A DNA stretch of 64,000 nt from Takakia lepidozioides (lineage: Eukaryota > Plantae > Bryophyta). The notes beneath the pieces were generated by a model that was not told the origin of the DNA, searched no databases, and saw only the letters and a list, made by a program, of their open reading frames with translations. The stretch is from assembly GCA_030704615.1 (NCBI GenBank), contig CM060732.1, positions 32,302,001-32,366,000 on the forward strand. The letters run 5' to 3'. Made by a program: the position numbers and the translations under genes. Below are positions 5,843 to 52,800 of this stretch, piece after piece. The number at the start of each line of letters is the position of its first letter. The stretch's first letter is position 1.

Positions 5843-8800
5843 GTGCTACTAGACTATTGAAAACCCGATCGATATGGCACTTCGAACATTTTTAAAACCG
5901 ATGATTCCATTCTTCCTCCTTCTAGGAATCCTACAATCACCGCCACGGTGGTCTGAAGTACATGTCTCACTTGAGGTGGACGTGCATGTACAGCTCCGAG
6001 GAAAAGTATGACCACCTGGAAGAGGCCTGCCATATGCACGGTCTCTCAATAGGATGTAGTACAGTCTAAGGCAACGGCCAACCATATTGCACAGGAAAGT
6101 TGACACTGAACACACCATTCCTCGTTTATTGCATAGTTCTGACAGCGCTTTCGCAATTTTTCTCGAGGATACATCGCCACAGTTTCTGCTCAACCATGAC
6201 TGATCAAAATTCATCACAGCCCAGGTCGAATTTTTTTTTCCTGTGAGCATCGCCTGTTTCACATCTCTAACCCCCGCAAAACATCAGAGCTGTAGTACGC
6301 ATGCACGGCTAACAGACTGGAGCTTATCTATACTGCTCCAGGATTGGATACGAGTTGGCCGATACGCAAATGACTTCCAAAGAAGAATGAACATTCAGCA
6401 TTGAATTAGTAGCATACAGTAATTCTAGTAATGTTCAGCAGATCAGAGAACTAGTTTAAAAGTGAATACTGGCATGGGGTTGAGAGACCTTGTCACTGAA
6501 ACCCCATCTCCCTACTGTGGGTAGCTCCATCCTTCCACTTGCAAACGTAAGCTGCAGAGACAGACCCATTCGATGTACAAACAATATGCTTAGGTCACCC
6601 ATGTTAGCTCCAAAAAATTGGCAGGCACGTGCATTAAACACGTACTGTCAAACTTGCAGGCGAACCCTTTCAAGATACGACCAGTGCCATTGTTCTAACC
6701 ACGGAAATTACACTGTATTATTCTAGTACTGGACATGACAGTCGAGGACAAGATGATACTCTTATTTGGCTTCAAGCATTCGACCTGCTCAAGGCACCCT
6801 TTAATTTATGTACTAAGAACGGAGGCTTGAAGTATCAAGAAGCAAGCATGTACCATACTCCTCTCCTCATAAGTAAATGGTGTACAATCTATACTTGTAA
6901 TAGCTCCTTCGTACGACCTAGATAGTTATGTACAAGTCCTTGGCCCGGAAAAGTCAATTCTTACACTGGGAGGATCCAAAATGCGCCCAGTCACTCTGGC
7001 CGGGCTTGGACTAAACTGAATACCAAACGCCTTCATGAATTCGTCAGATTTGTCATCGCTCGTAGCCATGGCCTGTGAGAATACACCATTGGTGATCATC
7101 TAGATCACGTCCGTTCCATACGTGAAGCAGTATATTCTTCTTTGAACATCGAGCTGTATTTTTCTACCGTGTCCCTTGGAAGGTACTATCCTCTGCTTTT
7201 TGTTGAGTTGGAGATGTGAATTTGGTCTAGGTATAGACCTTAGAACTAATAGTTTCTAGCTGGGCATCCGGTAGTTCAGTCAGCTCTCTTCGATGGGTCT
7301 ATGCTGGACAAGCTTCCGGTAAGAACAGCTTAACATTGGATCTATCTCATGTATTGCCCTGGGGCGCTTTTAGAGTTTCATGTAGAACCTAAGACTTATG
7401 TAAGATCCTCTGGCCTCCTTCAGGGGACATCATCTACTTCCCTTGAATCGATGTTCAATATTAATTGCTGACTTAAACATGAGCACAATGCGCCAATTCT
7501 ACGGCCTTAAAGATAATAGGAGAGAGTCCGAGCACACACAGTTGCAAATTCGCACAGCTCCTTCCGCTCTCCAGGTGATACGTCTTAGGAAAGACTACAG
7601 CTGCTCGTGCGTACGAAGACATTGCGCCCACATATACTGCCGGGAGCCGGGCATGATGCAGGCGATATTTGTACTTCCAATAGTACTTGGCCAGAGAACG
7701 CTCTTCAATCGTGACATTGCCCTGGTCATCTTTCACCTTCTTCAAAAACCTGGAACTCCAATTTCTGGGTCAATTGCGGCAACTATAATATCCCCACCCA
7801 CAAATTATCCTTATATAACGACAGCATTGGAAGGGAGATTATGTAATATAACATTTTTCACTGACCAGTGTCTACCTTAATGCGCCAAAAGGCTTGGAAC
7901 TCAGAGTTGCGATTCTGTGGATGCCATCCCTATATGTTGCGTCTCCACCCGTGTGCTTTCCAGCCACCTCCGTGCCTGCAAATTAGTCTTACTGAGGTCT
8001 TAGACATTAGAGCACTAGTCTGTCCATATGAGTATTAATCGACATGCAGCCTCCGTCCAATACGCGAACTGTAGCTTCACCCCACTACCTACATGGACTG
8101 CGCCTCTTGTTATCAATTGATAAGGAATCTTAAAAAGTGGTTGGTCAATATACTGAGAAGGTGCCTCGACTTGTCGGAAGAGAAAATTTCTAGGTAGAGA
8201 ATCAAGGAGCTACAGTTCTCCTGTTGCAAGTCTGAGCTAGAATATATAAAACCTACGTCCTGGGCACTAAGGCCATCATGGGTACTGAAAGGACGGCTGA
8301 TCTAAGTTACCTTCTGCCAGTCGTCTTCGCTCAAATATCGTTCAAGTCCCTCTCCAGAGCTCTCCAAGCGGAATTTCTCCTTTAAAAGCTCCTCAATTGG
8401 CAGGGGCTTAATGCATGTTGTGGTGGTGAAATCTGTTCCCATCAGACCGATGAGCAAATCAGAGATGTAAAGTGCTTGAATGCAGGAATGCATCAAGTAA
8501 AAGATAAAATAAAGTCCATGATACATGTATCTCTAGCTGCTAAACTCAAATGGGGGTTCCAAGTGTTAACTTTGATATACTTTGCCTTTGAACAAGACAA
8601 GGTGCATTTCAGTATCTGGGTGATCGCAGCGCACTTAACTAAAACGATTTTATATATGTACACAATTGAGAGTGAACAAGTTGATTCGGGGTTGATTCCT
8701 GATCACGTCTGGTTAACAATATATAAGCAATGCTAATTGAAGTTATTTCTCGTCTGGTAAGTGTTTCATACCTAGATCTTGGTCCACAGGCCATAAGTGT

Positions 8801-11800
8801 TAGGTGCCAGGAACGAAGGTCGACCTGTCAACCGGTTCGGAACAACATACTGCTAGAATATCGCCGAAGTGACAGTTGCAGGTTAAATGGAGCATGCTCG
8901 CGTGCATGAAGATGATCCAGGACTAGGGATTTTTGATGGGTGAGGACAGGGCAGGATGGGAGAAGTAGAGATGATGGTGTACAGGCGCTTTGAGCAGATC
9001 TGCATGGGCAGGAAATCTGCACGGCGTGGTGGCTGGGTGGACCGGATGCTGTAACCGGTGCTGTGCTTATAGAGTTGTACCTAGGTTGATGTTGGAATAG
9101 ACGTCACTGGACTGGAGTGATCTCTGTTACGATCTGAGTCAAAGAGTTGTGACTGGAATAAAAGAGGCTGGTTACATGAGGTCCATACTGTTGTTGATTC
9201 AAGCAAGCAGATTTCTTGGGATTTTGATAAATTCCCTGTGAATAGCAAGATAAACAAAGCGCCTGAAATTTGGTCATAACTTAGTTGGACTGAAGAGAGA
9301 AGAGTTAGATCCTTTTCAATAAGCCAATCATGTTTGGGTGTAGGAAGGTATACAGCTACAAATCTAGATGGTGAAGTCTTTAATATATATGTACATGATC
9401 GATTGATTCATTAGTCTACACGGTATTCCATATGATCTGCCTGTCCAGATTGGTACAATTGACTGAACAATCAATTCCGTTCATTGAGTGAAGAGCATGT
9501 TACCAAGATTGAGGCTGAGACCCATTTTAACGGGTTTGACAGTAAAATGAGAACTCGGCCATGCCTGCAGTCCCTCACCAAGGTCACCCGTAGGACCTAG
9601 AGATTGGTCAAAGAAGCCACGCCTTGCCTGCAGATAAACCCTGACATACATGGAGCATTTTTCCGATCCGGTTAACTTCTAGCCCTTAAGGGAGTGGACA
9701 GTTTGACTGCGTTAGTTCTAGTACAACGGGCTATCATAGAACCCGTGTTGCAGTTATATCTAGTCTTATGCATGCACATGCAGGCCCACGTCTATAATTT
9801 CCCAAATTATGTTAGGAGGAATGTGTGATATTTCTCTGACCCCTTAGATTATCGGGCTTAAGTGAAGTAGTGCACTAACTTTTTGTAATGTCCACGCAAC
9901 ACAACACAGTACTTAGCACACGATTCAAGGCGTCGACCTGCGCCTTCTCTGATAGAGGGCCAGACTGGTACTCACGCAGAAGAACCTTATCAATGATGCA
10001 TTCCTTGTTGATTTTGGCAACCAACTTAATCCGCACTACGAAGAATTTTCCGGGCTCACTGTCTGCCACCCTACTGGCGTCTCGTGAGGGGCCCGTCGGT
10101 TCTCTGTGCAAGCCAGCCAATGAGAAATCATGTCAATCCCGTTGGTAAAAGTTATGGTGCGGCAGGCGGTCAACAGTATTGTCACTGGCCTGCATGAATA
10201 TTGCAGGCTAGGGAGGAAAATCTTGCAGTCTAATCTGCTGGTTGGTGAGTACATATATGTAAGGTCGCATACCATGCTGAGCTACCTAGGACTGAATGAA
10301 AAGCAGACCTGTGCATTCTTGAACAGTATCTATATATATACAGAAATTAAAGAGACAATTAAAAAACCACAATCGTGCGTCTTCGAATCATACTGGTCTC
10401 CCAGTTGCTGATTTTTCTTAAGAACGTGTCCATGGATCATCAAGGCCGAGCTACTGGAGGGCCTGTCGGTCAACTCCCGGCTTCGAGCACTTACGTAAAA
10501 TCCACGTTCCACAAAAGAATGGACTGAGCACTGGGAGGTGAGTGGATGGTCTAACTGATGTCCAGTGCTCGTGACACTGTAGCTTTAAAGTCCTATCTAC
10601 AAATATCGATCGATAAGTTCAATTGTCAAAAACGCAGCAGGTCAGGTTCACACTTAACATACCTGAATGATGGGCCTCGCACTAGTTGACTTTCATGCAA
10701 GATAACATGATGTAATTTTTGGTCCTCAGAAACAAGAGGGTCCACATGTGAATAGAACATCTTCTCCGTCGTATGCATAGTTCTTGCAGGTCCCTTTGAA
10801 TTCGTCAGATGTATAAGTGGTGCATAACGTATTCACCAATTCCCTGCGAGACTTGTCCCACAACTCACGTTGAACACCTTGAATACTTGAAACCTCCTGC
10901 ATGCACATGGGAGGACGGTCCAATTCAGATTCTACGACTGTCCAGAGTCATCAGTCTTGCTCGAAATCTTGGAAGTCTGGTGACCCCCACAACACGCAGC
11001 GATACCGTGGAACATCCGAGTACACTCCGAGTACCGAATGTCCCTTTGTAACTGTGTAATGGGTGACATCAACCCACAGATCTACGTCGTCAAGGAGATC
11101 ACTTGTGCACAAGACCATGTGTCACTGGAAAATCCCTTGCTGGATGCACTCATATTTAGAGCAACATCAACTTGCAGTCTTAACTTTCTAGCGTTCTAGC
11201 AACATCAAAGCAAATGACATATCGGTAGACCATGAGGACATACAGACAAGTGCTCTGGTAATATATGGTATTGATAAACGTCGTGCTTCGGCGTCCATGT
11301 GACTGCAAAATAATTGCATTGGAGCTCTACTGGACGGCCGAGAATCCCAAATTCAGGTTTTGCGAACGGATTTGGATCGCTGGCACTGCCACATGACCGA
11401 CCACCCCTGCGCCTCAGCATTTGTGGATCTCCCGCAGCTGCAGCATTCCGGCCTGGGTCCGAAGTCGCCCCCCTTGTCTCTCCTGCATCACCCCTCCTTA
11501 CCGACTGGTCAGGACAAGCTCGCGCTATATAATTCAAGTTCAAGTTTCGTACGGGATAGACGATAGGCCAGGTAGTGAGTAATTCTTAGAAGCTTACAAA
11601 ACAATGTTCACAGTTTGATATATATTAGATCAGAGCAACAGCCTGCTTCACTCTGGACACAAGATTCGTACCTGACCTGATCTTCTTTGTGGGTGGTAAG
11701 ATTGATTCTTCGGGAGTCACGTCTCGAGCCATAAGAGCTCTCATCGCTCAAAAGTTGGTCGCCTTCCTACTGAATGCATGGCAGCACCACCCACTATATC

Positions 11801-17326: not shown

Positions 17327-17494
17327 ATGTCTGAAGCCGATTGCTTCTATCTGGGGTCGGTTGGGCTTTTGGGAGAGTATTGTCCCACCACCAGAAAGAG
17401 ATATAAACAGCAGCCGCCGCCTAAGGTTCCTCTGGGAGGAAGGCTGCATGCAGCCGAGGCGGAGGGGTTACTTGCATCTCTAAGATCGTCTTAG
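17327..17494 (+). CDS. 55-aa upstream ORF of eIF5 with poor-context AUG
   Basis: ATG in context TCTTTTATGT (T at -3 and +4); MSEADCFYLGSVGLLGEYCPTTRK...LRSS*; stop lies 10 nt before the eIF5 ATG. Confidence 0.75.
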   Translation: MSEADCFYLGSVGLLGEYCPTTRKRYKQQPPPKVPLGGRLHAAEAEGLLASLRSS

Positions 17495-17504
17495 TGCTGA
17501 GAAG

Positions 17505-18899
17505 ATGGCGCTCCAGAATATTGGAGCTGGCAATCGAGATGATGCCTCCTACCGGTACAAGATGCCGCGGCTTGTGACCAAGATTGAGGGGCGGGGTAAT
17601 GGAATCAAGACCAACGTGGTGAATATGGTGGAGGTTGCAAAAGCTCTCGCCAGGCATCCATCGTACACGACGAAGTACTTCGGATGCGAACTTGGTGCGC
17701 AGTCCAAGTTTGACGAGAAGACAGGAACGTCTATCGTAAATGGTGCACATGATACCACCAAGCTCGCTGCTCTACTCGAAAACTTCATCAAAAAGTATGT
17801 GCAGTGTTATGGATGCGGCAACCCTGAGACCGAGGTTGTCATCACCAAAACTCAGCTTATTACCCTCAAGTGTGCTGCATGTGGGTTTTTGTCCGATGTC
17901 GACATGCGAGACAAACTTACCACATTCATATTGAAAAATCCCCCTGAGCAGAAGAAAGGAGGGAAGAAGGACAAGGCTTTGAGGAGGGCTGAAAAAGAGC
18001 GCCTGAAAGAAGGGGAAGTTGCTGACGAAGAAATGAAGAAACTGAAGAAGGAGACGAAGAAGAAGAAGGGGGCCGATGATGATAAGAAGGTGGTTAAGAA
18101 GAAGTCTGGATCTGACGATGAGGAGTTGTCACCTCCTGTAAGTCAGGCAGACGAAGAGGAGGATGTGGCAGATGTCGAATGGCAGACAGACACATCAGCA
18201 GAAGCAGCACAGCGTCGGATCCTTGAGCAGCTCACCGCAGCAACGAGTGAAATGGTAATGCTCGGCAACGACGGCACGGGTACGACTGAGGTTTCACCGA
18301 GAGTGAGGACTCCCAAGGAAAACAAGCCAAAAGTTTTGAAGAAGGTGCTTTCCAACAAGAAAGGGGAGGTCCTTGAAAATGATGTCAAAGATATTGAGCT
18401 TCCGAAGATTGTTGAGCTCAGCCCTCACGAGAAGCTCGTGAAGGATTTCCAAGAATGCTTGCAAAAGGGGTTTACTCCCTCTCAACTTGCATCGCACATT
18501 CAGAGCAAGGGAGAGCCTCAGCAAGAGGTCATGGATGCCTACTTCCAGGCACTGTTTGAAGGCCTTACAAAGGGGCTCTCAAAGGAAGTGGGCTTGAAAA
18601 AGCTTTATTTGGCCAATGTGGTGTCGGATGAGGCCTCTCAAGAGGCGCTCCTTGGTGCTATTGAAGCCTTCTGCTCTTCTCTTCCACCGGACGCAGGGAA
18701 GGAGATTGCTGTCCTTCTCAAGATCCTCTATGACGAGGATATCTTGGAGGAGGAAGATATATTGCAATGGTTTGATAAAGGAGGTTCTGCCACCAATGGT
18801 AATGGTGTGGGGAGCACGGCCGCCCAAGTGAGGACGTGTGCACGACCATTTGTTGACTGGCTGCGCAGTGCCGAGGCAGAATCAGAGGAGGATGAGTGA
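17505..18899 (+). CDS. eIF5: Eukaryotic translation initiation factor 5, intronless CDS
   Basis: MALQNIG..YRYKMPRL..KIEGRGNGIKT, TKYFGCELGAQ, zinc ribbon CYGCGNPET..CAACG, VEWQTDTS, W2 domain LYDEDILEEE..PFVDWL..AEAESEEDE. Confidence 0.98.
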   Translation: MALQNIGAGNRDDASYRYKMPRLVTKIEGRGNGIKTNVVNMVEVAKALARHPSYTTKYFGCELGAQSKFDEKTGTSIVNGAHDTTKLAALLENFIKKYVQCYGCGNPETEVVITKTQLITLKCAACGFLSDVDMRDKLTTFILKNPPEQKKGGKKDKALRRAEKERLKEGEVADEEMKKLKKETKKKKGADDDKKVVKKKSGSDDEELSPPVSQADEEEDVADVEWQTDTSAEAAQRRILEQLTAATSEMVMLGNDGTGTTEVSPRVRTPKENKPKVLKKVLSNKKGEVLENDVKDIELPKIVELSPHEKLVKDFQECLQKGFTPSQLASHIQSKGEPQQEVMDAYFQALFEGLTKGLSKEVGLKKLYLANVVSDEASQEALLGAIEAFCSSLPPDAGKEIAVLLKILYDEDILEEEDILQWFDKGGSATNGNGVGSTAAQVRTCARPFVDWLRSAEAESEEDE

Positions 18900-31517: not shown

Positions 31518-32909
31518 TGTCATGGTTTTAGTCAGGTTATCTAGAATTACCTACTTCTAGTTAACTAGGATATTTTAGATATTTATATTTATATTTTGTG
31601 TGTTGGGACTTCATTTGGTCTCACATGTCAAGTGAGGTGTCGAGCCTCACTTGAGACATGGGGATAAGTTTTCCCCTTGTGAGGATAGAGAAGGTTCATC
31701 TTCTTGTAGTTGAGCCTCCATGAGTCTTTCTCACCTCCATAGCTCTAGGTATTGAGAAGGAGTGTGTTGAGGGCTTTGTAGGGTGGATTCACTAGAAGGA
31801 AAACGCGGAATAACCACTGGCCTCCTTAACCACTCTTGTCTTTTACCACTCTATAAATCACTCCAAGTAATGGTAACCACTGGCCAGTGGTTAATTCCCA
31901 TGAAATGCCGCAGTGGCATCATATGGAGTGGTTGGAAGTGGTTTCAACCATTGAGTAATCCAAGTGTAATATTTAATTTTATATTTATTATTCAACATTT
32001 GGTCAAATGTTTATGTTATGATAATATCCGACATGGACGGGTACAGTGGTAAATTATGAGTGGTTAAAGACACCTCAGTGATGGGAAGTGGTTTAAACCA
32101 CTTTCTACTCCACGTGTAATAATTCATTTTTTTAGATTTTTATCATTTCAAAATATATTTTAATTAACAAATATATTATTCCACGTGGACGAGGATAGTT
32201 TACGTAGATCTGGAGTGGTTAAAGACCCCCCACTGATTGGTACCACTTGCACAGTGGTGGAATGTGAGTGGTTAAGACCCTTTTGTAACTGGAACCACTC
32301 TTCAAGTAGGCACTTGTGAGTGGTTACATACACGTGAGTGATTGGACCACTTTTGTGGTGGGTTGTGAGTGGTTGAAGACACCTGAGTGATGGGAGGTGA
32401 TTGAAACCACTTGCTACTCCGCGTGTAATAATTCAATTTTTATTTAAGATTTATCATTTCAAAATATATTTTAATTACGAACTATATTATTCCACGTGGA
32501 GGGGGATAGTATGCGTAGATCTGGAGTGGTTAAAGACCCCCATTGATTGGTACCACTTTGAGAGTGGTGTAGAGTGAGTGGTTACAGACCATTTAGTAAC
32601 TGGAACCAATCGGCCAGTGGTTACGCGTGAGTGATTACATACACACCAGTGATTGGTATTACTTCTGTGGTGATACATGAAAAACTTTAGTGGTTTGTGT
32701 GTTGATGGAAAACCCAAAATCCATCTATCGCTACATTCATCCATCCAGTCATGAGTAGAGGGGACTTAGTGTTTTTTTTGTCTTCCCTGCCACTGTGGCA
32801 ACGTAGCTACGGCGTAAGCCCAGCCCCGTGAGCCTGGGAGCTGAGCTCACGCTTCAGGGAAGCGTGAGCGGCACAAATCTGCTGGAGAAGCAGGTCCTAT
32901 AGGCAAGGA

Positions 32910-33509
32910 TTGCAGGAAGAGGGCATGCCTATGAAACTTGGGACGTCGCTGTCATCAACCGAGATAAGCATGCTGGAGGAGGGAGGGTTCTGTCTTGCAC
33001 GGTCCTGGGTGGTGCCCTCATGCACTGTCGGTACAGATGTGCCACATGCTCCGGCAATGCCTCCACCCGGTGCCAACTCCCACCCAACAAAAAGAGATGG
33101 AAAAACAGTGCGCCGTGTCGCTTCGGGTGCAGATCACGAATGCAAGATGGAATCGGCTAGAATTTTGCAGGTTCGGGTGACTCGTATCACCGAAGTCCCT
33201 ACCCCGGGGTATGGACGGATTTACATAGTGCTGTCTATTGGCTCAGTTCTTCATGACAAAGAATATCAGGTTACCGTGGGATATTTCCCTACGTGCACTT
33301 GTCCGGATTTTGTAACGATGCGTGAGGGCGCTCTCGGCATAAGAGGGAAGTGGGTCCCCTGCAAGCATCAATATTACATATACCTTGTAATTATGTGCTG
33401 CAACGGTAAGAGAGACCAATTCATTCACCAAGCCACACTAGGCTACGGAGAAGTAATCACCCTTCTGCAGCGGAACACCTCACGTAGGGCTCCACCAAAT
33501 TCTCTTTGA
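32910..33509 (+). CDS. SWIM zinc-finger ORF (possibly 5'-truncated) inside the CACTA element
   Basis: YQVTVGYFPTCTCPDF...VPCKHQYYIY = CxCx(n)CxH SWIM signature. Confidence 0.75.
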   Translation: MQEEGMPMKLGTSLSSTEISMLEEGGFCLARSWVVPSCTVGTDVPHAPAMPPPGANSHPTKRDGKTVRRVASGADHECKMESARILQVRVTRITEVPTPGYGRIYIVLSIGSVLHDKEYQVTVGYFPTCTCPDFVTMREGALGIRGKWVPCKHQYYIYLVIMCCNGKRDQFIHQATLGYGEVITLLQRNTSRRAPPNSL

Positions 33510-33719
33510 ACACATACGAGCCATGCCCGCTTCCCATGCTGGTTTCCAGGTTACCGTGTAAAGACTTTGCATTTAGGACAAACACATACATTTTGTTCGC
33601 GGAACCAGAGCAAATGCACATGCCATTCATTGTAAGCGTCTATCTGTGAATTGAAATAAAGTGTGTCAATCATTCTGAGCTCAAATCTGCCATATTTTCA
33701 TATTCCTCTTTTGGTGCAG

Positions 33720-36700
33720 GCATTGCAGACATGGTGCATGGTGGCCCCCTTTGTTTTGTCACGGTCAATCTGTGTTTTACGTCTCGTTGGGCGACGCCAA
33801 CGGCAGGGAAGTTTTGGTGGACGAGACCATTGTTGGAGGCTGCAGGGATCCAATATGGCGACGCATCAACGAGGAGTTTGAATCAATTATTTGTAAGAGG
33901 CTTGTTACACAGCCTTTCTCAGGCAAGATGTTCCATGTCTGGGATGGCAACCACCGATTGCTCGCCGCAGAACATGACATCGAGGTATCATAGCACTGAG
34001 GAGGAGTGGCACTATTGTGTGGCCTCCATGGTACTGGATCCCAAGGGAAACATCACTGCGTTCTTGACAGCAATGCATGACGTGAACAAGTAAGTGTCTT
34101 TCCTGAAATAACCTGATTCTTTCCCTCATGTATGTGTTCGGGAATCATATCAGACATGTGATGACATACCACTGCTTGTGGCAGGGGAACTGAAATCGCC
34201 CATGTTACAACGAACCTGGTACACACCCTGTTCAAGATCTAGAATATTGGCCAAATGCCCCTCAACACATTCAAGAGCATCCTCAGCCCAGAAACCTTCG
34301 CAAAATGCCAGACCTCCAAAACATCTGACACATGGTACAAGCTGGCAAGGGGAGCATTCATGGAATACATGTACACGGTTAGTATATCATCACCAAGAAC
34401 TTTCATTTTCTAGTACAATTCAAATTATTCTGTTATCTGATTTTTGATTGGTTTTTGCAGCAAGAGATAGCGGAGGCTGAGGAGAGGGCTAAAGCATAGT
34501 ACTACTTCAAAACCCCTGAGGGGATGAAAACATCGAAGGGAGTGGCTGAAGCAATGAAGTTAAAGATGAATGAGACTCGGAAGAAGCTCCTGAGCGCCTT
34601 GGTGAAACAACTGAGAATAGCAGACCCTGCCTTTGCGCCTCAATTCTTGAACGAGCTAAGGCCACTGGAACAACAACACCAAGCCAGAGATGACACAGGA
34701 AAAGCTGCAGCTCTTGTCAACTGCAGTGGTGGACTCCAAGCAGAAAGTTAAATGGTTAGAGATTTGGTATTCTGACCCAATAGTGAAGGACACATATTGC
34801 TTCCCAAAGGGGGAAAGAGACGAAAACACTGGCCACATCAGGCCCTTCAGCGATCAAGTTTTTGATACATGGCTGCACAAGCCACGTACTGGAGCCAAGT
34901 AATCTTGTGGACTGTCTTTTCTTGAATTTACAGAAGGATCTTCCCTGGTATGAACTCTAACGTTTTGGATTGCATCTTTTGACAGATTGAAGCTCATGCA
35001 AACCAAGTGCTGGAGAAGCAGCTAAATGCTTACAAGATGACGATGACCTTCCCCAAAGATACTCTAGATGATTACTTGAGATAGTGGAAGGCGACAACGT
35101 GGAGTAACTGTTTCTTCAGAGAGTTCGCCAGGGAGGGGGGCATATCCCGCACAAAAGAGTTCGAGCAGCAGTTCGGAGCCGAGGGAGCCATGAAAAGGGT
35201 CCTGTACATGTGGGTCATTTGAACTAAGCAGGTTCATCTTCTTCCTTTATGGCCCTCCAAAATTGCGTGCGTCACCGCACTCATTTTTGGAGGGTTAGCT
35301 CTCTGGACTGTTTTCCCTACGTCTCATTCAATGCAAGCTCATTTCTTGGAGACTCGCTGCCTATCTGGTTGTTTTTTCATGTTATGAGTTCTTGTTGTCT
35401 GACCTCTACCTTCAATTGTCTTCTGACGTTTATTAAGTTGTTTTCCAGTTGTGTGCGTGTTTGTCAACTTTTATTGGACCCCTTAAAATGTGTGCGTTGA
35501 CGCACACAGATTTCAGGGGCCACACATCATATAGTTTCTCCTCCACTTTCTGATATTGTGCCTGCATTGTTCTGTAGGTATATCAAGAACGTTCTGATTC
35601 CTTGGAACAACCTCAGCAAGTACCCAGGCTTCATCGACTTGTGGGCTGACTCCTCCAACAGCCATACCATGTACACTGCAACAATCCTCAGGGATTACGG
35701 TAGATATCACCTCAAGGACTGCTGCTGGTATCTCGACATACCCAAATCAGATTGCCCATGGTATGAGTTGCAGACACGGAACCAGAATGACAATGCGGAG
35801 TCATTGGCTCCACTAACAGACAGGGAACTGCATGACAGAAACCTGCAAAACCTTGTTGAGAAGGAACCTGCAGCCACTAACACTCCGGTGAGAGGGAAGG
35901 GGAAGGGAAAGGGCACAAAGGACAAAGGGAAGGAGAAGAGCGCCCAAGGGGATGCTGCAGTAGGTCAAGGATCGTAAACGCAAGGGGAAGTTTGAGCCAT
36001 TCGGCGTAGTGGAGCACCCATCCCGAATCAACCGAGAATGCAGATGCGAGCTTTACTCCTTCCTTGCCATGATGGAGACCAGGAAAGGTGGTTACACTGG
36101 AGATCCCTCTCCAACATGGGTTAAGATGAGTGCTTTTCTGGAGTCGGTAAGCAAATTTCCCATCTTCACTGTTGCAAATTTCCCACCTTCACTGTTGCAA
36201 ATTTCCCATCTTAGATGTGGTTTTGAATTTTTGTCGGCGCTGTTTGCAGGTTTCGTCGGGGCGGGATTGGGTGAATGGTGCTCAGAAGCCGTGTGCTGCA
36301 GACATGGTGATTGAGACATTTTGGACGGGCAGGCGGTACCAAATATTCTCCCCACTGGCACTTGCCCAACCTGGAATGCATTTGACGAAAGGTACTGGCG
36401 GTGGGTCTTCTCTTTTTGCAAGTTCTTTCTGTCGGATGGAGGGGTTCTGGTGATGATTCAGTCTATCACTACGAAATGCCGTCGGGAGATTTCAAGCTAT
36501 TTGAAGGCCTCAGGGATGAAGATCATCAAAACGTGGAATGGTGTGAACAGCCTGTACCTGACAAAGGGTGACTGCCCGGGACAAATGGTAATCATCCTTC
36601 TCTTTTCTGCTTCAATTTTATTGCAATTTGGCCCCTCCGGAATTGAGTGCGTTGACGCACTCAACTCCGGATGGTGCAATCGCTCTCATCTGAGTGGGAT

Positions 36701-37300
36701 TTTGAATCAGATCTTATCTGATTCATGATGTCTTTTTGAGCAGACCCGCCTTTTTGAAGCCGTGTGCCTCGTCAGGATTCGCCCAACTTCCACTCCTGTG
36801 TCAGTGAAGGAATTCAGGCTTCATGGGGGAGGCTGTTTTATCAACAACAGGTTTGATCTTGTGGTGGACGACATTCACTACAACTACGTAGATTCTAATG
36901 TGTGTTTGAGAAAGTCCAATTCCACACCATGGGAGAGTGGCAAAGGAGAAGAGCCCAACTTTTATTCAGACAATTATAGAGACATGCTCTCATCCGGGGT
37001 CGCGCATCATGGACCTCACTCTTGGGATAGATTAGACCCCGATCAATCTCTAGTGTTCTCTTCTTGTTGTAGAGTTTGTAAAACCTTGCTAACAGTACAA
37101 CGTCTTGTTGGCGCTTCGTACCATGCTTGCAAGGCTGGGGGCAGGCATTTGTTTGGTGTGGAAGGGGATGCGGATATTTTCAATGACATCATTGCAGGCT
37201 TGCAAGGGCCAGCCCCTGCCGTCCAGGAATAGGAGGGTACAGTGCTTGTGGATATCAACGAAGGGGACGACAAAGACCTGGACGACAATTTTGCATGTGA
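33720..37300 (+). pseudogene. Intron-containing ParB/Srx-like + beta-class N4-cytosine/N6-adenine DNA methyltransferase-like gene, disrupted
   Basis: MFHVWDGNHRLLA (~33928-33966; ParB-type DGxHR); ADMVI (~36298-36312, frameshifted at the catalytic motif) ..WNAFD..VFSFCKFFLSDGGVLV; KEKSPTFIQTIIETCSHPGSRIMDLTLGIG|ASYHACKAGGRHLFGVEGD (~36943-37170; SAM-binding motif I-II). Several GT..AG introns; stops and frameshifts. Confidence 0.75.
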
Positions 37301-39823
37301 GTAAGTTGAAATTCTGTATGATTCTTAGTTCTCGAACACAACCCCCCACCATTCCCTTTTCTTCTATGTTCGCTAATGCATTGCGTTCACTTTGGTTGCC
37401 AGGATATTGGAAGCTATTCCTTTGCACAACGTCTGTGTTTTCTAGTCCGACTTCTGGTGCAGCCCTCCACGTTCGGACATCCTGCCAGAGTACGCTGAGG
37501 CCATTGCTCGACAGCAGTTGTTGAACAAATCTCCCCCGTGTGCTCGGAAGCAGAAAAGGCACCAAAGAGCTCGGGTTTTCGTGGATGAAAGTGCCACAGT
37601 TTCAGGGCATAGTTGTAGTGATTGAGACCATGCGTCAATGTAGTCCGGTTTTGGTTCAGGGCATGTGGCAAGTGCCATACCTATTGTGTTCCCACACATT
37701 TATGTAATACAATTCCTGCATACGTTGAATGCTCGTTCCTCAATTTCAAGGCTTGTATGCATTTGCAAATATGACTTCTGTCTGTATTTATGTCTTCATT
37801 TCAAATCACTCTGTCATTTTTGCATGAGCTAACATTTTAGGTGCAAGCCTTATGGCTGCAGTAGGTATGCACTATCGATTTCAGCGCTAGATGAAGGGCA
37901 CGACATTCCCAGCAAATGATGTGGGAAGGGATGAAGCGAGACCAGGTCATGCTCATTTGTGTTTCACTTGTGTTTGTAATATGCATATGGGAGCCTAGCA
38001 GCCCTGGGAAGGGGCAAAGAGGTTCATGGTGACATTATCAAAGCTGGAATTGTACCAGAACATTCCCCTGGTGTACATCTACATCAAATGTGAGCCTGGC
38101 AGCCCTGGCCACCGATAGACACGTGTCCACACTGAGAGTGTCGCCACGTGTCAACATAATCTCCAATATCATCCACGGACCACCAACTTCCACGTGTCCA
38201 CTGGAAAACGGAAGTGGTTACTTTACCACTATGACACGTCAGTTTACGACTGTGACACGTCACAGTGGTGAGTTTACACATCACAATGGTTAATTTACCA
38301 CTATGACATGTCAGCGAACAGGTGGACTCGGACGTGAGTGGTTCGAACCACTGTCCTTAACCACTGGTGCCACGTAATGTCTTTACCACTCACTTGTCCT
38401 AATCCACTGGTTCTTCATCGCTCTGGGGCCAGAGTGGTTTAGTGTCTTTTACCACTCAAAATGAGTGGTTAACAGAGTGGTTATTCCGCGTTTTCCTTCT
38501 AGTGATTCCCTTAGCAAGGGTGCCCTTGGCTTGACTTAGTTTATGTGATTGAGTGGATTCATGAGTGGAGGGTTTCCATTATGTTCACTTTCATTATCAC
38601 TACAAGAAGATCACATTATGCTTATGAGTGCGGAGTGTAAGGATGGTTTTGCACTTGTATTGGTGTACACCAAGGAGTGAGAGAGCTAGGGAAAGCTCAA
38701 GTATCTCACAAGGCTTGCAAGGTGTTGCAAGGGAGAGTGTGTTTGCATTGCATCAAGGAGGTGAAGAGCTCAAGGAGAGAGCTCTTGAGTTACAAGACTT
38801 TGCAAGTACTGCAGGGAGAAAGTCTTGTGTATGTGGAAGCAAAATGTTTGAAAATTTGAGAAGAATGAGCGCCATCTCTTGTATCTCAAGTGTTGTGACA
38901 ACCATTTGCCAAGGAAGTGGCTTCTATGGTGAAAAGAATGCATGAGGGTTTGTAGAAGCATTATTGTGCACCAAGGGTTTGAGAGCTTGGAAAAGAGCTC
39001 TTGCATCACAAGAGAAGCGTCTTGTGTGTGGAGAAGATAGACACTAGGGTTTCAAGAGCAAGCTCTAGTTGTTCATGGTGTGAAAGAGAAGCCAAAGAGT
39101 GGCACATGCTTGGGTTAGAAACACCATAGAAGGAGTACAACAAAGATAGCTTGAGGAGCATTGAGTAGCTCAAGAGAAGCTAAGAAGTGGTTGTTTTATC
39201 CATGGTGAAATGAAGCCAAATGGGGTTTCATTTGGTTGACAAACAAGTAAGCTAAGGCGCTAGAAGGGAGTGCTTTTGCTAGTTCTATGAGTTCTTGGAT
39301 TGCTCTTGGTGAAGCAAGTGGTTGACCAAGCAAGTGGCGCATGTGTGGAGCATGCTTTCTAAGTGCGGCTTCCAACTTCAAGCTTGAGGAGAGCTAGAAG
39401 GTGAAGGGAACAAGTTCATTCCTTTGTATATGAGGTGATGCTTATGTGGAGCATGTTTTCAGCCCATTGAGGCTTCTATTTTCAAGCCTTGGAGAGCAAG
39501 AAGAGATGGAGATGTATTGATGCTTGGAGAAGCAACACATAGAACCCAAGAATGGAGCATGTGTGTGGATGGCCAAAGAAGAGCACATGAATGAGTGCAA
39601 GACTTGGTTGCTTGTCAAATGAGGTAAAAAGCTCTTGAGCTCCAAAGAGAAGTGAAGCTTGTTGTGTGCCAAATGCATTGCTAGGTGAGATGGAATCAAG
39701 ATTGGTTGTGGCTTGAGGTGAAGAAGATCAAGGTAGTTTGCCTTGGTATCTCATAGAAGTCATAGATGCTTGAGGAGAGCAAGCATGAAGCTCAAGGAAG
39801 CCCAAACCCTAGCTTGGACTGCA

Positions 39824-41940: not shown

Positions 41941-43274
41941 ACGGGGATTACTAAACCGTGAGCAGAATCCGTGAGGAGAAAATTCCGTGAGTAGAATTAT
42001 GCTCACGCTTTTGGATGTACTCACCTATAACCGCAGACACCTATTCGGCTTAGATGACCTATTACTGCGGGTAGTGTCCAGTATAACATGCATACCAATT
42101 CATCCTTATGGATGAATGATGGATGAATGGACGATGAATGTATGTTGGACGAATGGCACATGGATGAATGTAGTTTGTGATTGAATGCAGAATTAAAAAG
42201 CATTTTTGAGTAGTGGTTGCCAAATCCCCCGAGCTCCAGAGTGAACCTCTGTCAACTGCAGAGGGTTGTGGTTGTCCTTTCACCAGGTATCCTAAGTCGA
42301 GAGAGATGCTGACACCCAATTGCAAAGAAGGTGGAGAGGCCATTTGGTGCTTTAATATAAATCGTTTGAAAACAGCCGATTCATTCCGACGAAGAATATC
42401 CACTGCTACTGGAGTCGGAGTCCAAAACGAAGGAGAAGATTTTGTGTAGAGCTTTGTTGTCATGTCCTTCTTCCATGTGATCAAAAATCCATGCTGGGTA
42501 AATGCCAGGTCTTTTGCTTGCAAAGCAGGGGTTGGGTTCATTTGCAAGTTTTTCAATTTTTATTTTTATTTTATTTTTCCCCGAATATGCCAAATTAAGG
42601 TGTCGTCAACGACACCTTAATCTACCTTAATCTGGCTAGTCTTCTGGTGTGTTATTTGGGATGAATGGCATCTACAAATTGCTCGGACCACATAATTTAT
42701 TATTTGTTGTCATGTCATTCTTCCATGTGACCAGAAATCCATGTTGGGTAAACGCTAAGTCTTTTACTTGCAAAGCAGGGGTTGGGTTCATTTGCAAGTT
42801 TTTCAATTTTTATTTTTATTTCATTTTTTCCCGAATGTGCCAGATTAAGGTGTCGTCAACGACACCTTAATCTGGCTGGTCTTCTGGTGTGTTATTTGGG
42901 GTGAATGGCATCTACAAATTGCTCAGACCACATAACTTATGATTCATTGTCATGTCCTTAGTCTATGTGACCAGAAATCCATGCTGGGTTAACGGTCGTT
43001 TGCTTGCAAAGTAAGGGTTGGGTTCATTTGCAAGTTTTTCAATATAAATATATAAATATATAAATATATATATATTTCCCCCGAATGTGCCAGATTAAGG
43101 TGTCGTTAATCTGGCTGGTCTTTGGGTGTGCTATTTGGGGTGAATGACATCTACAAATTGTTTGGACCATATAACTTATGATTCGTTGTCATGTCTTTCT
43201 TCCATGTTACCAGAAATCCATGCTGGGTAAATGCCAGGTCTTTTACTTGCAAAGCAGGGGTTGGGTTCATTTGC
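41941..43274. other. Unidentified ~1.3-kb insert replacing the gag 3' end and protease N-terminus; contains ~3.4 tandem copies of a ~245-bp unit
   Basis: Units start near 42454, 42704, 42944 and 43184 (TTGTCATGTC..AATCCATGCTGGGT..GGGTTGGGTTCATTTGC); three CCGTGAG motifs at 41956-41991; pol resumes at about 43275. Confidence 0.75.
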
Positions 43275-46200
43275 CTTTTCCAAATTCAAACATCTTTGGG
43301 TGGTTCAGAAAAGGCGCGAGGGATTACACGCCATGAGCTCTTCATTCGATTGCAGCCGGATCATCCTATGGACGGCTCAGTCATGAGAGCTAAAGCCATT
43401 GTTATAGACGCGATGTCCTATGATGTGCTTGTTGGTGGGGCTATGTTATACCCAATGGGATTTACTTTGGACTTTTGGGAGGAAACGACATCCTATAGGT
43501 TGGAATGGCAGTCAGGGGATGGTCGACGTGCACTGCTCCCAGTGCGGTTTATTGGGAATGTAGCGGTGGATCATAGGAACATGATGCCTACATTGGCTGC
43601 ATTCTCAAGGGTGGTGGCTTGGGGTGGTGAGCTCTTGGAGGGCAATAGTCATGCAAATGATAGGCCACCACATGATGAGGACAAGCAATTAGCATACAAG
43701 GCTGAGTTGATTCCTCATGTTCCTTTGCATAGTTCACTGTGGAATACAGTTGGGGATTTGCAACGAGTGGCAAGCCAGTGTGTACAGCAAGCATAGTAGG
43801 AGGCATTTCCATCGGTAGGTGAAGGGAGTTCAGTTACATCACCTGGACCTTCTCAATTTTTATTGGACACAATGCCTATTATCTGGCAACAACCTGACTC
43901 AGGCATTTGTTTGCTAGACCTGTTTAGAGGCATGAGCAATGGGCTTGCATGAATGTTGCAAGCATGAATCAAAGTACGCAAGTACTTGTATGTGGAGAAG
44001 GATGAGATTGCTTGGCGTGTTTCCATGCGCCATGTTGCCTTACTCACACATCAGTATCCTGAGTTGTTCCATCTCTTAGCAATTCAAGGGTATCAAAAGG
44101 CCTTGCCAGCAGACATTACCTTGCTGGGGCGGATGATTTGGACCGACATGGTGCCATTGACTTGGTGATAGTTGGATGGCCTTGCCAATGACACTTTCCC
44201 GCAGGTCATGGAAATGGCTTGCATGATGCACGATCGCATTTGTTTTGGGAGATATTGAGAGTGTTGCGTGACTTGCAGATGAGGCAAATGCAACCTCCAG
44301 CTTACATCCTGGAGAATGTTCCTCTTATGGGGGACTCTCCGGCCAGGGTTATGGCCAATGTGCATCAGGTGCGGTCTTGGATTGGATCGGCGGTGCTATT
44401 GGATGCAGCAGCGGTGGAATCACGAGCGCATCGACCTCGATTGTGGTGGACCAATCTTGCACCACCAAAGCTGCTCAAGAGAGCATATAATTCCATTCAA
44501 CGGCCACCCAATCTCACAGTTGAGGGCATTTTGGACCAAGGGAGGCAACCACATAGGGTGCGACATGATGACCGTCCACCTCTAACAGTGGTAAATCGAG
44601 TGGGGCAGCCACGTGCAGCCTTGCCTACGCTCATGAGCTTTCCCTCGTCTCATGCTTTTCGAGACAATGGTCCTGGGTTGATTTGGGACAGTGTGCTACA
44701 ACAATTGGTGGAGCCCAATGCGGATGAGCGAGAGCGGGCAATTGGATTTGCCACGGGCACTACAGCTGTGCCAACTCTGTTAGAAGCATCACGACGTCAG
44801 GTGTTGGGTCAGGAAATGGATCTCAATTGCTTGACATGGATCATTGGCTTGTGCATGGCTGAGCAACGGAGATTGCAAGCATTAGCGGCTACTTTTGCAC
44901 TTCCATTGGATATTGCACTATCTCTGCCAACCGGGACGGTAGAGGTAGTGAGTGGGGGCGAGCATAGGATCATGGGGTGCAAGCACCCATGGCAGATATG
45001 GGATGAGATGCGCAAAGAGAGAGTCATTGGATCTCTCAAGCAGCAGTATGAGGAGTGGGGAGAGCCATATACTGAGGATCAGTTGGAGGTCAAGGTAACC
45101 AATGTTTTTGAAGAGGTTGAGAATGTTTCTTCCCCAGAGGATGTTCTCAAGGTGGCTATGGTGGAGCAAGTGGAGGCTACGCCATAGTCAGGGTGGGCGG
45201 ACAAGGCCCAAGAGGTTGCTATCTAGCAACCAAAGGATGCGTCTTCTACCTCCAAGCCTGGTGTACCCAAGGTTGCAGTCACTGAGGACGGAACCAGATG
45301 TTGGACCTACAATCACCGGAGGAGACAGACAGAGGATCCAGTGATTTCTAAGGGCTTATAGAAATTGCTTTGCCTTCGGTTTGAAGGATTTGGGGAGTTT
45401 GAATGGCCAGGAGATTCGTATTGATTTGGCAAGTGACACGCCAATTTTTCGAAGGCCCTACAGGTATAGTGATATGGAGAGGTCTTTGATCCAGTCACGG
45501 ACTATGAAATTGTTTGAAGCTGGATTGGTGGAGTTGTCAGGCACGGAATATGCCTCGGCAACGGTGATGCCAGCTAAGAAGGATATCTATGGCAATTAGA
45601 CAGAAATGAGGATGACATGTGGGGACTACCGTCCTGTGAACCGTCAGACTAAGTCCGATAGATATGCCATGCCAACTCCAGAGGAGATCTTTGATGTCAT
45701 TGGGCATGCAAAGGTGTTTAGCACATTGGACTTGCGATCCAGTTACCACCAGTTGCCAATCAAAGAGGCTGACAAACAAAAGACGACATTCTGGGGGATT
45801 GACCAACATGGGAAGGATTGTTTGTACCAATGGCGCTTCCTACCGTTTGGGTTGAAGAATGCTCCTGCAGAGTTTTAGAGGGTCATGGATAGGATTCTTG
45901 CGGGGCTAGACTTCGCCCGGTGCTACATTGATGACATCATCATCTTTAGTGCTACGATTGAGGAGCACGAGAGACACCTTCAGATGGTGTTTGAGTGCTT
46001 GAGAGCGCATGGGTTGAAATTGCACCCTGAGAAGTGCAAGTTCTTCCACAACCAGATTGAGTATCTGGGCCACATGATATACCCTGGAGGATTGGGTGTT
46101 CAAAAGACGAAGGTGGAGGCCATTGCACGCATTCCATGCCCCATCAATGTTAGCAGAGTTCGTGCTTTCATGGGGTTGACAAACTACTATCGACGGTTTA

Positions 46201-48607: not shown

Positions 48608-49147
48608 ATTGTGGTATAGCTTTCTAGGATTGTGTGCTTAGATTGTGTGGTGGACAGCGATGTATGTTGTGGCACGATGCTTAGGTGCACGACAGCTGTC
48701 ATGGTTTTAGTCATGGTTATCTAGAATTACCTACTTCTAGTTAACTAGGACATTTTAGATATTTATATTTATATTTTGTGTGTTGGGACTTCATTTGGTC
48801 TCACATGCCAAGTGAGGTGTCGAGCCTCACTTGGAACATGGGGATAAGTTTTCCCCTTCTAAGGATGGAGAAGGCTCATCTTCTTGTAGTTGAGCCTCCA
48901 TGAGTCTCTCTCACCTCCATAGCTCTAGGTATTGAGAGGGAGTGTGGTGAGGGCTTTGTAGGGTGGATTCCCTTAGCAAGGGTGCCCTTGGCTTGACTTA
49001 GTTTATGTGATTGAGTGGATTCATGAGTGGAGGGTTTCCATTATGTTCACTTTCACTATCATTGTGGTATAGCTTTCTAGGATTGTGTGCTTAGATTGTG
49101 TGGTGGACATCAATGTATGTTGTGGCACGATGCTTAGGTGCACGACA
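48608..49147 (+). repeat. 3' repeat block B1 (48608-48694) - GC - A2 (48697-49060) - B2 (49061-49147)
   Basis: B = ATTGTGGTATAGCTTTCTAGG...CTTAGGTGCACGACA (~87 bp, two near-identical copies); A2 matches the element's 5' end. Confidence 0.95.
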
Positions 49148-49151
49148 AAAG

Positions 49152-52100
49152 ATGGCCTTGTCTCAAAGTGCTTGGACAAAAGGGCACTGCACCAAACAAT
49201 GTTCCAAATCCTCATGAGCATTTAGGCTGCAAGAAACACAATGAGAGGGAGCGTCTTTGAAGTTTGCCGCCACCAGCAGTATCATGTTTGCTACCTTCCA
49301 CAAGAAACCAGTCACTTTCGAGGGTCTATACTTTTTCCAGGTATCAGCCCACACAAACTTCCAGGGTATAGGATTGCTAGAGAGATGCTGCCACTTTTGA
49401 TTCCATTTCCTATCAAAGCCTCTCTTTGGCAGCTGCAACTTATAACCAAGCTTAACCGAATAGTGAAAAAAAGGGTCATGTTTATTGTTCATCCACACCC
49501 ACTTTCCTGGGTCAAACTGCAGCAGCTTAATAGGAGCAGTTAAAAATCAACAGAAGATATTGTTATAGAGCTACAACTCCAAGGGAGGCATCGGGTTAGG
49601 ATTGCCAGAAAGCAAACAGTAAACCCTTATGTCAAAGCAAGCAATGTCGTTAGGGATACAGATCACCGACGTCGGTGAAACAAACATGCCATCTTTAGTT
49701 ACAGAGAAGCCAGTGCCATGTATGTAATCACTATCTCTGGAGATTGCATATAGAACTTTAGGTTGGGAATCAATATAGTATCCGAGCCAACCAAGCACAT
49801 TTTTGCAGGTGAGGCTCAGAAAGAAGGCTTGTCCAATGCTCTAGAAGGTCTTCCATGACCTCCTTCCATCCAAGGTTTACTCATCTTGCAGAGAATTGCT
49901 GAGTAGCAGTTTCAGTAGAGATAAGAGAGTTCAAGGAATCATCCCAAATTTGTAGCAGATGAGCCAAGCCTGCAGCTTCCCATTGATCCGCCCAACATTT
50001 AGTATAGGGAAATAACATTTCTTTGTCTCGATTATAATTCCCAAAGAGAGGTTGTCTCAACACTTCGTTGAAGGACGTAGAGGGACTTATCTAAACCAGG
50101 AAAGGGCGCAACTTGCACCACGCCACCCAAAATGGATTGCCAAGCTCGGGATCCCAGCCGAGGTTTTTCATTAAGCTTCCCTCCTTGGAGCATCCATCTC
50201 AACGAGTGAGCCCATCTGTCGCTTTGTGCGAGGCGTAGTAGTCATGAGATGCTGACCAGTCTACTCCAAGGACTGAAAGGTGAGTCAGAGCATGAGGAAC
50301 CTACTTCACAAGAAGCACCGTGAACTGCGCTTGGGGATCTAATACACCTAAACCCCTATTTTTTTTGCTTTGAGTCAGCTAGTCCCAACTGAAGGCTATT
50401 TTTGAAGATGAGGTTGGTGTTGCCCCCCAAATAAAGTTTCTCGTCAACGACTTAACCTTCTTAATAATCAGAGATCCTGGAGACCATACCGAGGCCAGAA
50501 ACCACAAAGAGGCCAGAAGAACTTGCTTCACATCTAAACTCTGCCCACTATAGATAGATATAAAGAACACCAGTGCGCAAGTTTCCTTTTCAACTTAGAA
50601 AAGACAGCAGCAAACCTGACATGCATAGTCATTGAGATCAGTACCCACCAGTTGCCCCAACAGCTCATGCGATTCACTATCCAAAAGCCATCTCAAACCC
50701 AACTCAATACCCCACGAGGCAATGTGGGAAGCTAAGGTAGGATTTGACAACTGACTTAGCAAGTCCACTGCTTTCTTCCAATTAATTTTGAGACCCGAGG
50801 CTCCACAGAAGGCCTCCAGTGAGCTGAGTGCCGCGTTGACATTGGATAAGGAAGAGTTGTTAATAAATAACGAGATGTCATCGGCATACAACGAAGACTT
50901 AATGGAAGAGGAAAGTGAATCAAGCGGGGAATTGGGAACCACCAAGCCCAAGGAGTCTTTCCTCTTATCTAACAAGTGGCCCAGACCATCTACAGCTACC
51001 AGGACAAGAAATAGGGCTAGCGGACAACCCTGCCTAACAGATTTGAAGAGAGGAAAGGCTTTGGAAACCACTCTATTAACCATCACTCTACTCGAGGCTG
51101 AAGAGAGAAGGATCTGAATCCACTTTAGAAAACCCCCATTTATCCCAGCTGCTTCCAATGCACCCAAAAGGTAGCTCCAATTGATATTATCAAATGCTTT
51201 CTCGAAATCTAACATCAAGAAAGTTAGGGGTTGGTTATCGATTCGAGCCAGATGCAACGCCTCATTGTTAAGAAGAATATTCTCAAGTATCATTCTATTT
51301 TTCATGAAACCTGATTGCTCTGGTCTTATCAGCTTAGATAACAAGGGCAACAAGCTGCGACGAGGGAGAGCCTTAGCAATGCTTTTATAGATAGAGTTTA
51401 ACAAAGTGATGGGCCTATACTAGTTAGAAAGCAACTCACGGTCACCTTTCTTGTACACTAAGGTAATGAATCCCTGCGATAACTGTGAGGGCATAATCCC
51501 TTTGATCAAGATATCATTGGCCATTCGCAGGAAATTGTCCCCAATGACCTCCCATAGGGCAGTGAAGAACTCCACCGGCAACTCGTCCAATCCAAGGGCC
51601 TTCATCGTACTCAGAGCTTCCGCAACTTCCATAAGCTCTTCTTTGAAAAATGGGGCTGACGGACCATTTTAATACGGAAGAATTTCTCCTTCTCCGCATC
51701 AACTTCAGCCATATTCTTTTTGGCCACTAGGTATGATTCCATCGTAACATCGCTATGGTTTCCTTCTTCAATCCTTCTTTGGCAATGTAACAGGCATTTA
51801 GTCAAGGCCTTTTGGTGCTGAGCTCTTTCCAAGGTTACAGAATGGGAGAGGGCCTGAGCCAAACGTTTAGTGGCTTGAAGCTTATGCAAGAAGGAGATGG
51901 AAGGGGATTGGAAGCCAGTTCCAGAAGATGTCCATTCCTGTTTCAACTTCTGTAGACAGTCAAGCTTTTTTAGAATGCCAGGGTTCAGTTTGAAATAACC
52001 ACGTCCTCTCGAATGCAATCCAGGCAGTTTAAATTCAGCAACAACCACGGCATGGTCAAAGTCAGCTAGGATGGGAGTTTGAGCCATACCTTTAGACCAA

Positions 52101-52190
52101 GATAGGGGAGTTTGAGAACAATAAATCCTGTCCAGACGGGCCATACAAAGATGAGGAGGACTTCTCAAGTTTGACCACGTGAACCTTAAG
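49152..52190 (-). mobile_element. 5'-truncated LINE ORF2 (APE endonuclease C-terminus, RT, zf-RVT), degenerate
   Basis: FTWSN..ARLDRIY, DFDH, GYFKLN; LDFEKAFD, VRQGCPL, YADD; KVTGFLWK..CVSC..EDLEHCLVQC. Confidence 0.93.
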
Positions 52191-52800
52191 TACTGTGATT
52201 GGTGTCTGGGAGGTGTCCACCTTCTTGTCGGAACGCATAATTTACGCTGCCTTCAGGAGGCGTCATACTTTATTTTACTTCATGCTTACAAGATACCAAC
52301 CCCTCGGTTACTAGTTAAAACCTTAAATAAACCAATAGGTATTGGCCAGTTCTTTCAAATGTTATTTGCGTAGTTGTTTGAACGCCCAATCTCCGTCGGT
52401 CTTAGTTGTATAGGTTAATTCAATTTTTTTACCTTTAGCGATTATATATAAACATATACACACAACCTAGATGTGACCCCGTTATAATGGCCACCTGACA
52501 ACCAGCATGTAGCCCAGTGGTAATGGGCACATACCATGTTGGATGTGGTTGTGGGTTCAAACCACGGTCTGGTGTGTCATGAAGGTGTCCACCTTTCAGC
52601 TGGAAGGTAGCCCTTGTGGTGAAGTGACACCATAAGTTACGTTCCCTTCGGGAGGCGCGCCATATATATATATATGGCCACCTTCGAAAGTGGTTGGGGG
52701 CTCAATCCACTATGATTGGTGTCTTGGAGGTATCCACCTTCTTGCCAAAAGGCATAATTTACGATGCCTTGAGGAGGCGTCATACTTTATTTTACTTCAC
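52190..52800 (+). mobile_element. tRNA-derived SINE-like element plus two partial copies of its body
   Basis: Head at ~52501-52575 with A box GTAGCCCAGTGGTAA and B box GGGTTCAAACC but no proper cloverleaf; body GGTGTCCACCT..CATAA(T/G)TTACG..GGAGGCG recurs at ~52195-52282, ~52583-52660 and ~52712-52799. Confidence 0.6.

Follow-up and report, generated by a model that had tools for sequence, protein, structure and literature searches.

Genes that join a ParB-like domain to a DNA methyltransferase have been described as transposon cargo in algae. The Sola-1 element Sola1-1_Ec32 of the brown alga Ectocarpus carries, on the strand opposite its transposase, a gene for a ParB-like plus predicted N4C/N6A DNA methyltransferase protein, and it has been suggested that this accessory protein binds its own element and modifies it (Dinatale et al. 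2025, PMC12477816). In red algae, the PF01555 methylase and ParB-like genes of Plavaka PAG2/PAG3 are carried by elements of the CACTA-type, Mutator, and Zisupton groups, with inverted-repeat arrays beside the ParB gene and a cassette that moves among superfamilies (Petroll et al. 2025, 10.1101/2025.02.11.637652), and ParB-HTH fusions to adenine methylases occur in chlorophytes (PMC4738411). The general idea of transposon-borne ParB plus N4C/N6A methyltransferase genes is already published for algae (2025), and a literature search of incomplete coverage returned no land-plant version. Two further systems invite comparison, namely the Marchantia host genes MpDN4MT1a/b, which have the motif TSPPY and shown 4mC activity and for which no ParB domain is mentioned (10.1101/2021.02.12.428880), and the anti-silencing Mutator elements of the VANDAL/VANC type, whose accessory protein presumably targets repeats of the element itself (cited in 10.1101/2025.02.11.637652).

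The locus considered here lies in a 64-kb stretch of Takakia lepidozioides DNA (hereafter the window), which by appearance is repeat-rich plant DNA, and contains a decayed member of a family encoding both domains in one gene. The family matters more than this copy, as it brings land plants into a proposed class, so far algal, of transposon accessory proteins that target their own element. Judged by description, the Ectocarpus gene is a ParB-methyltransferase fusion of the same kind, differing in its brown-algal host and Sola-1 vehicle, whereas Plavaka PAG2/PAG3 place a methylase-SET and a ParB-2OG oxygenase in separate genes and the present family combines both domains in a single gene, in which motif IV is non-canonical. 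VANDAL/VANC is similar in combining a Mutator-type element with an accessory protein, a functional analogy only, with no shared domains evident. Marchantia DN4MT1 is also a land-plant amino-methyltransferase of prokaryotic type, but it is set apart by description and motif; its TSPPY is absent from the family, and the link to it suggested in the initial annotation finds no support here.

The CACTA insertion and its interior

The element spans 31790-38504 (6,715 bp) and is bounded by identical 29-bp terminal inverted repeats (TIRs) at 31790-31818 (+), starting CACTA, and 38476-38504 (-), flanked by matching 3-bp target-site duplications (TSDs) of ATT at 31787-31789 and 38505-38507. It interrupts a 365-bp host repeat whose twin at 48697-49061, 95-99% alike, is uninterrupted and has one ATT at the same place (near 48968), so that insertion with a 3-bp duplication is proven, and the perfect TIRs and TSD reported earlier agree with this empty site. 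Both subterminal regions, at 31819-32700 (with a 311-bp tandem duplication at 32057-32672) and 38130-38475, are rich in ACCACT/AGTGGT, at a density of 29-32 per kb versus 0.6 per kb outside (about 50-fold). The TIRs, 3-bp TSD, and subterminal repeats at both ends identify a CACTA-type insertion, and the TSD establishes that the element jumped at least once as CACTA. No CACTA transposase (TnpD/TnpA) was found inside it by Pfam searches of the longer frames, and the interior is explained by other parts, namely a SWIM transposase tail and the exons of the ParB-methyltransferase gene. Pack-CACTA and other non-autonomous En/Spm elements combine CACTA TIRs, a 3-bp TSD, and subterminal repeats with the lack of a transposase and with foreign, rearranged cargo; the architecture here is alike, although the cargo is a piece of a transposon rather than of a host gene. 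About 270 bp between the 3' flank of the gene and the CACTA right end (37860-38129) contain a 17-bp direct repeat (at 37991 and 38092). The uninterrupted twin of the host repeat, a TG...CA sequence, is bordered by an 88-bp direct repeat (48608-49147 in all) and has no short TSD.

Inside the left CACTA end lie remains of a Mutator-like element, whose SWIM transposase tail the initial annotation had missed. The outer part of a terminal repeat (32796-32924, +; outer edge approximate) is delimited by a step in contig depth and loose ends at 32797/32924, and its motif is common to the ends of two related loci, L005 and L011. It is followed by a segment (32925-33765, +) that appears inverted relative to the family layout and holds a transposase tail together with the sequence 3' of it and the inner terminal repeat. 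The tail (32926-33509, +) is equivalent to the C-terminal third of a transposase of Mutator-like type that bears a SWIM zinc finger (CxC...CxH). It matches the L011 transposase with 33% identity over 182 aa (E 4e-22) and that of L009 with E 3e-8, and reaches E 0.049 against Pfam SWIM; a homologue search with this frame alone returned nothing, and its relatives emerged through comparison with the related loci. In same-species contigs, which leave the present copy at 32924 and 33760, position 32924 is followed by the reverse complement of the sequence that runs down from 33765, and at the joints of these inverted-order contigs the two points lie 2-5 bp apart within the terminal-repeat motif. One contig joint also links 33712 back to 32813.

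The family layout is provided by two long relatives, L005/L009 and L011, both from one sample (one other assembly), in which a transposase stands head-to-head with the ParB-methyltransferase gene; in L006, L007, L008, and L010 the gene occurs without a transposase within the range covered. Long but degenerate inverted ends (TGGG...CCCA) bound the L005/L009 element, together with an 8-bp duplication, an arrangement typical of Mutator rather than of CACTA, and its ends and those of L011 have a motif in common with the same-species contigs. DDE-like motifs are recognizable by eye in the L009 and L011 transposases, and the Mutator assignment is based on these, the SWIM finger, and one 8-bp duplication, Pfam giving no MULE match. 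Both ends and the 8-bp TSD are present in L005/L009, whereas the window copy has one broken Mutator end only, with neither a second end nor an 8-9 bp TSD in 37300-38504. The initial annotation had proposed a CACTA family carrying its own DNA-modifying enzyme; the usual vehicle of the gene instead appears to be Mutator-like, represented here by a rearranged fragment. The complete L005/L009 element, with its 8-bp duplication, itself lies 25-33 bp inside a CACTA-like end (L009 10995-11028, upstream of L005), the partner of which was not found, and this position makes nesting a plausible first step.

Summed contig depth is 100-190k for the Mutator end and SWIM tail, 16-20k for the CACTA left end, and 1.4-8k for most of the gene, values that depend on an 80% likeness cut and are not copy numbers. 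This inequality speaks against the three parts normally moving as one unit, and no same-species contig spans the CACTA-to-gene junctions. The stretch from 32797 to 33760 is by far the deepest in the contigs, which suggests that a short derivative exists in great abundance.

A spliced ParB-methyltransferase gene and its protein family

Exon-by-exon comparison with relatives resolves the gene into nine exons on the forward strand, from about 33766 to 37625. Exon 1 (33766-34089) is a remnant that holds the last two-thirds of the ParB-like domain, including the GNHR motif, and bears a frameshift at 33966-33969, where same-species contigs carry two letters absent here (at 33966 and 33969). Since the frame starts within the ParB domain, near what is residue 65 in the corresponding exon of the relatives, the gene is cut at its 5' end. 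Exon 2 (34185-34377) has a stop at 34240; exon 3 (34461-34898), a stop at 34497 and two frameshifts; and exon 4 (34986-35209), a stop at 35082, where other copies, among them same-species contigs, have C. The frameshifted exon 5 (35578-36146) encodes a conserved HLK.C.WY stretch followed by a lysine-rich linker. The first half of the methyltransferase-like domain is encoded by exon 6 (36250-36587), with motif IV reading D-I-L-D (36315-36326) directly after a 1-bp frameshift, and the second half, up to the SAM-binding motif I, by exon 7 (36744-37030), which has a frameshift near 36933 and a dead donor at 37031. Exon 8 (37111-37300; acceptor uncertain) covers the motif II region (GRHLFGVE) with a stop at 37230, and exon 9 (37403-37625), a conserved last exon with a stop at 37443, matches the last exons of L005, L006, L010, and L011. 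GT-AG borders are present in seven of the eight introns, the exception being the AT donor of intron 7, for which same-species contigs have GT (37031 A>G).

Five stops interrupt the frame and no fewer than six frameshifts disrupt it; this copy is dead and yields no protein, and the stops, frameshifts, and mutated donor all confirm its earlier description as such. The motifs listed previously (DGNHR, ADMVI, the W..F..L.D.G stretch, EK..IIETCSHPGSRIMDLTLG, and GRHLFGVE) were likewise all recovered. The extent of the gene has been revised: the spliced, intron-containing structure stands, but the end at 37300 falls short of the ninth exon, which reaches 37625, and the start at 33720 gives way to a frame beginning near 33766, preceded by a reversed piece of the Mutator-like end. 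A splice acceptor at 33719 was considered as the gene start and ruled out, the DNA up to 33765 being Mutator end sequence. In one contig, about 96% identical and probably derived from RNA sequencing (RNA status predicted), 36586 is joined directly to 36743, indicating that a close relative of the gene was spliced across intron 6.

The family is multi-copy, with many diverged gene copies within single assemblies rather than a single-copy occurrence, and its only named relative is an annotated gene model of the moss Ceratodon purpureus. Beyond plants, viral contigs contained no relative of the gene, and prokaryotic genomes gave one stand-alone ParB-like frame rather than a fusion. In phages, the match was limited to the SAM-binding end (E 0.09), and these searches revealed no donor. 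A PHROGs search with the window pieces gave weak matches only. Two metagenome matches to the TIR extended over 21 bp only, inside apparently bacterial coding DNA, and were taken as chance, and an RTX protein (P0029) was dropped as a spurious match.

The exons were searched as separate pieces, and folds were predicted from the natural relatives P0033 and P0070. The N-terminal piece scored 0.94 against DUF6551 clusters and 0.91 against those of ParB_N, and a ParB-domain model built from 92 rows has a pLDDT of 88. The top Foldseek rows for this model are nearly all ParB/Srx proteins (Noc, Srx, and ParB), each weak (E of at least 0.02), and the model reaches Z 7.1 to KorB, Z 7.0 to PadC, and TM 0.57 to a ParB cluster. 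The GNH[R] motif is found in nearly all 92 rows, and Pfam gave no ParB match for the domain. Fold and motif are consistent with the expected ParB-like identity, and modeling lends moderate support to a ParB/Srx fold in intact relatives.

Modeling gives strong support for a beta-class amino-methyltransferase fold in intact relatives, as had been anticipated. The exon 6 search yielded about 30 true relatives, and the C-terminal domain of P0033, which the window exons match, scores 0.96 to PF01555 clusters, with a Pfam match to PF01555 below the cut-off (E 4e-4). Its model (pLDDT 71) shows a permuted Rossmann fold with motif IV ahead of motif I and finds its best structural matches in CcrM, M1.HpyAVI, and M.BceJIV (E 4e-10), with Z 14.5 and 3.2 A over 197 residues for M.BceJIV and Z 14.3 for CcrM, while the alignment between the family profile and CcrM covers positions 29-222 (E 0.003). 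The same fold, with motif IV before I, is shared by M.MboIIA, M.PvuII, and rotifer N4CMT (Z 13-14.5 over this whole group, CcrM and M.BceJIV included). Pfam searches with the window's own exon pieces matched neither PF01555 nor ParB, and a PDB sequence search with exon 6 gave no match.

The catalytic region departs from that of CcrM, whose DPPY lies opposite D-I-P-E in the family profile alignment. Motif IV reads D-[ILV]-P-[DE] family-wide: across 30 rows the first residue is D in 25, the third is P in 25, the fourth is E or D in 27, and an aromatic fourth residue occurs in none, with the same pattern in the six long loci. Neither SPPY nor DPPY, nor any other form of (D/N/S)PP(Y/F/W), was seen at motif IV in these 30 rows and six loci. 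On the SAM side, D-x(3-4)-TG and the acidic residue after GR are kept, and the F of FxGxG and often its first G are lost. The fourth residue of motif IV stacks on the flipped base; with an acidic residue there, activity is not to be taken for granted, and the tetrapeptide, from which the initial annotation had meant to read the product, does not distinguish 4mC from 6mA. Its claim of a writer of non-5mC marks likewise finds no canonical motif in any family member. Given a SAM side that is largely kept but an aromatic residue replaced by an acidic one throughout, the sequences incline us to regard the intact family protein as a putative binding or base-flipping pseudo-enzyme; that it transfers methyl groups is somewhat less likely. 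Should it methylate, the chemistry would be new, as would this source of non-5mC marks in plants; should it not, it would be a conserved pseudo-methyltransferase.

Intronic palindromes as candidate targets

Three palindromes of 42-52 bp, also missed initially, share the core TGCGT-NN-(A/C)CGCA and lie in intron 4 (35253-35294 and 35475-35522) and intron 6 (36628-36679). Their number exceeds expectation (3 found versus 0.05 expected), in a test of clustering, not function, as the pattern was derived from the same three sites. L011 has at least seven palindromes with the core CCTCGT-NNN-ACGAGG between its two genes (6751-9463) and L005 has two with CACGGATCCGTG (5914-6359); no such array was found within the range covered for L006, L007, and L008. 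Such differences in core between subfamilies suggest a matched protein and site, and with each subfamily having its own palindrome, matched and swapped pairs become directly testable. The three intronic palindromes are the likely target of the family protein, in preference to the ACCACT-rich ends that it had been proposed to mark, because the palindromes travel with the gene and the ACCACT repeats are part of the enclosing CACTA element. GGATCC occurs in the L005 palindrome core and GTTGAC in that of the window copy; both are sites of restriction-modification type. Elsewhere in the window, repeats of 240-250 bp (42453-43352) contain perfect palindromes at 42594-42621 and 42839-42876 with a core CGT-NN-ACG, as in the intronic palindromes; they may be an array of another ParB-methyltransferase family element, or of Gypsy.

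Probable formation of the chimera

The locus is probably a non-autonomous CACTA element that encloses a rearranged Mutator-like wreck with the ParB-methyltransferase gene, the resulting chimera having jumped as CACTA. The parent would have been a Mutator-like element in which a SWIM-tailed DDE transposase stood head-to-head with a spliced gene for a ParB plus beta-class methyltransferase-fold protein, accompanied by family-specific palindromes. It most likely inserted into a CACTA element and was then trimmed: one Mutator end would have broken mid-way with a flip of 32925-33765, and deletion would have removed the remaining transposase, the divergent promoter that the two genes shared, and the first part of the ParB gene, the far Mutator end also being lost. 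The CACTA element would then have been moved in trans by a transposase encoded elsewhere, presumably with the cargo already inside. In intact parents, by analogy with the described algal systems, the protein would most likely load at its own palindromes and shield the element from host silencing.

The last jump is where an unlikely alternative diverges, according to which the chimera was never mobile as a unit and a Mutator element landed in a resident CACTA, both decaying in place. Nesting does happen, as the complete L005/L009 relative just inside a CACTA-like end illustrates, and sister chimeras are missing from the contigs, none of which spans a junction. However, neither the Mutator target duplication nor its right end survives, and the perfect CACTA TIRs and the close likeness of the host repeat to its twin stand against the many lesions of the cargo, which appears older than the last jump. 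Clean CACTA ends and a TSD around the gene would equally be expected if a CACTA family had stably adopted it to write 4mC/6mA actively on its own DNA, leaving this copy as a decayed member, and close copies lacking several of the lesions, the contig spliced at intron 6, and the similar genes carried by red-algal Plavaka (EnSpm/CACTA) elements and mobile between superfamilies (10.1101/2025.02.11.637652) point the same way. Such adoption is nonetheless improbable: the gene is cut inside its ParB domain, lacks its promoter side, and is accompanied by Mutator remains; depth at the CACTA end is several-fold above that of the gene; no canonical catalytic motif exists; and the spliced contig may come from a Mutator-borne copy. 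Capture of part of a host gene, whether ordinary or domesticated (a DN4MT1-like methyltransferase, for instance), would account for the intron-rich structure, the splicing of a related transcript, and the Ceratodon purpureus gene model, but is very improbable in view of the many diverged copies per assembly and the lack of TSPPY, and is largely refuted by the linkage to a transposase.

If the rearranged nested element is accepted as the preferred reading, this copy is a well-resolved case of a cassette between the ends of another superfamily and illustrates a possible route for vehicle change. A broader proposal, which we consider doubtful as a whole, is that land-plant transposons carry a self-recognizing ParB plus methyltransferase-fold protein whose new motif D-x-P-D/E still marks its own palindrome, and that the cassette passed from Mutator-like to CACTA elements, with intact CACTA-borne copies elsewhere in the genome. 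Other sequences recognized by eye in the window include a hAT transposase fossil (3675-5672, +), an intronless eIF5-like frame (17484-18896, +), and LINE endonuclease/RT remains (50598-52252, -), and a C5 cytosine methyltransferase-like frame (PF00145, E 5e-4) lies within a Gypsy pol region at 44192-45184 (+).
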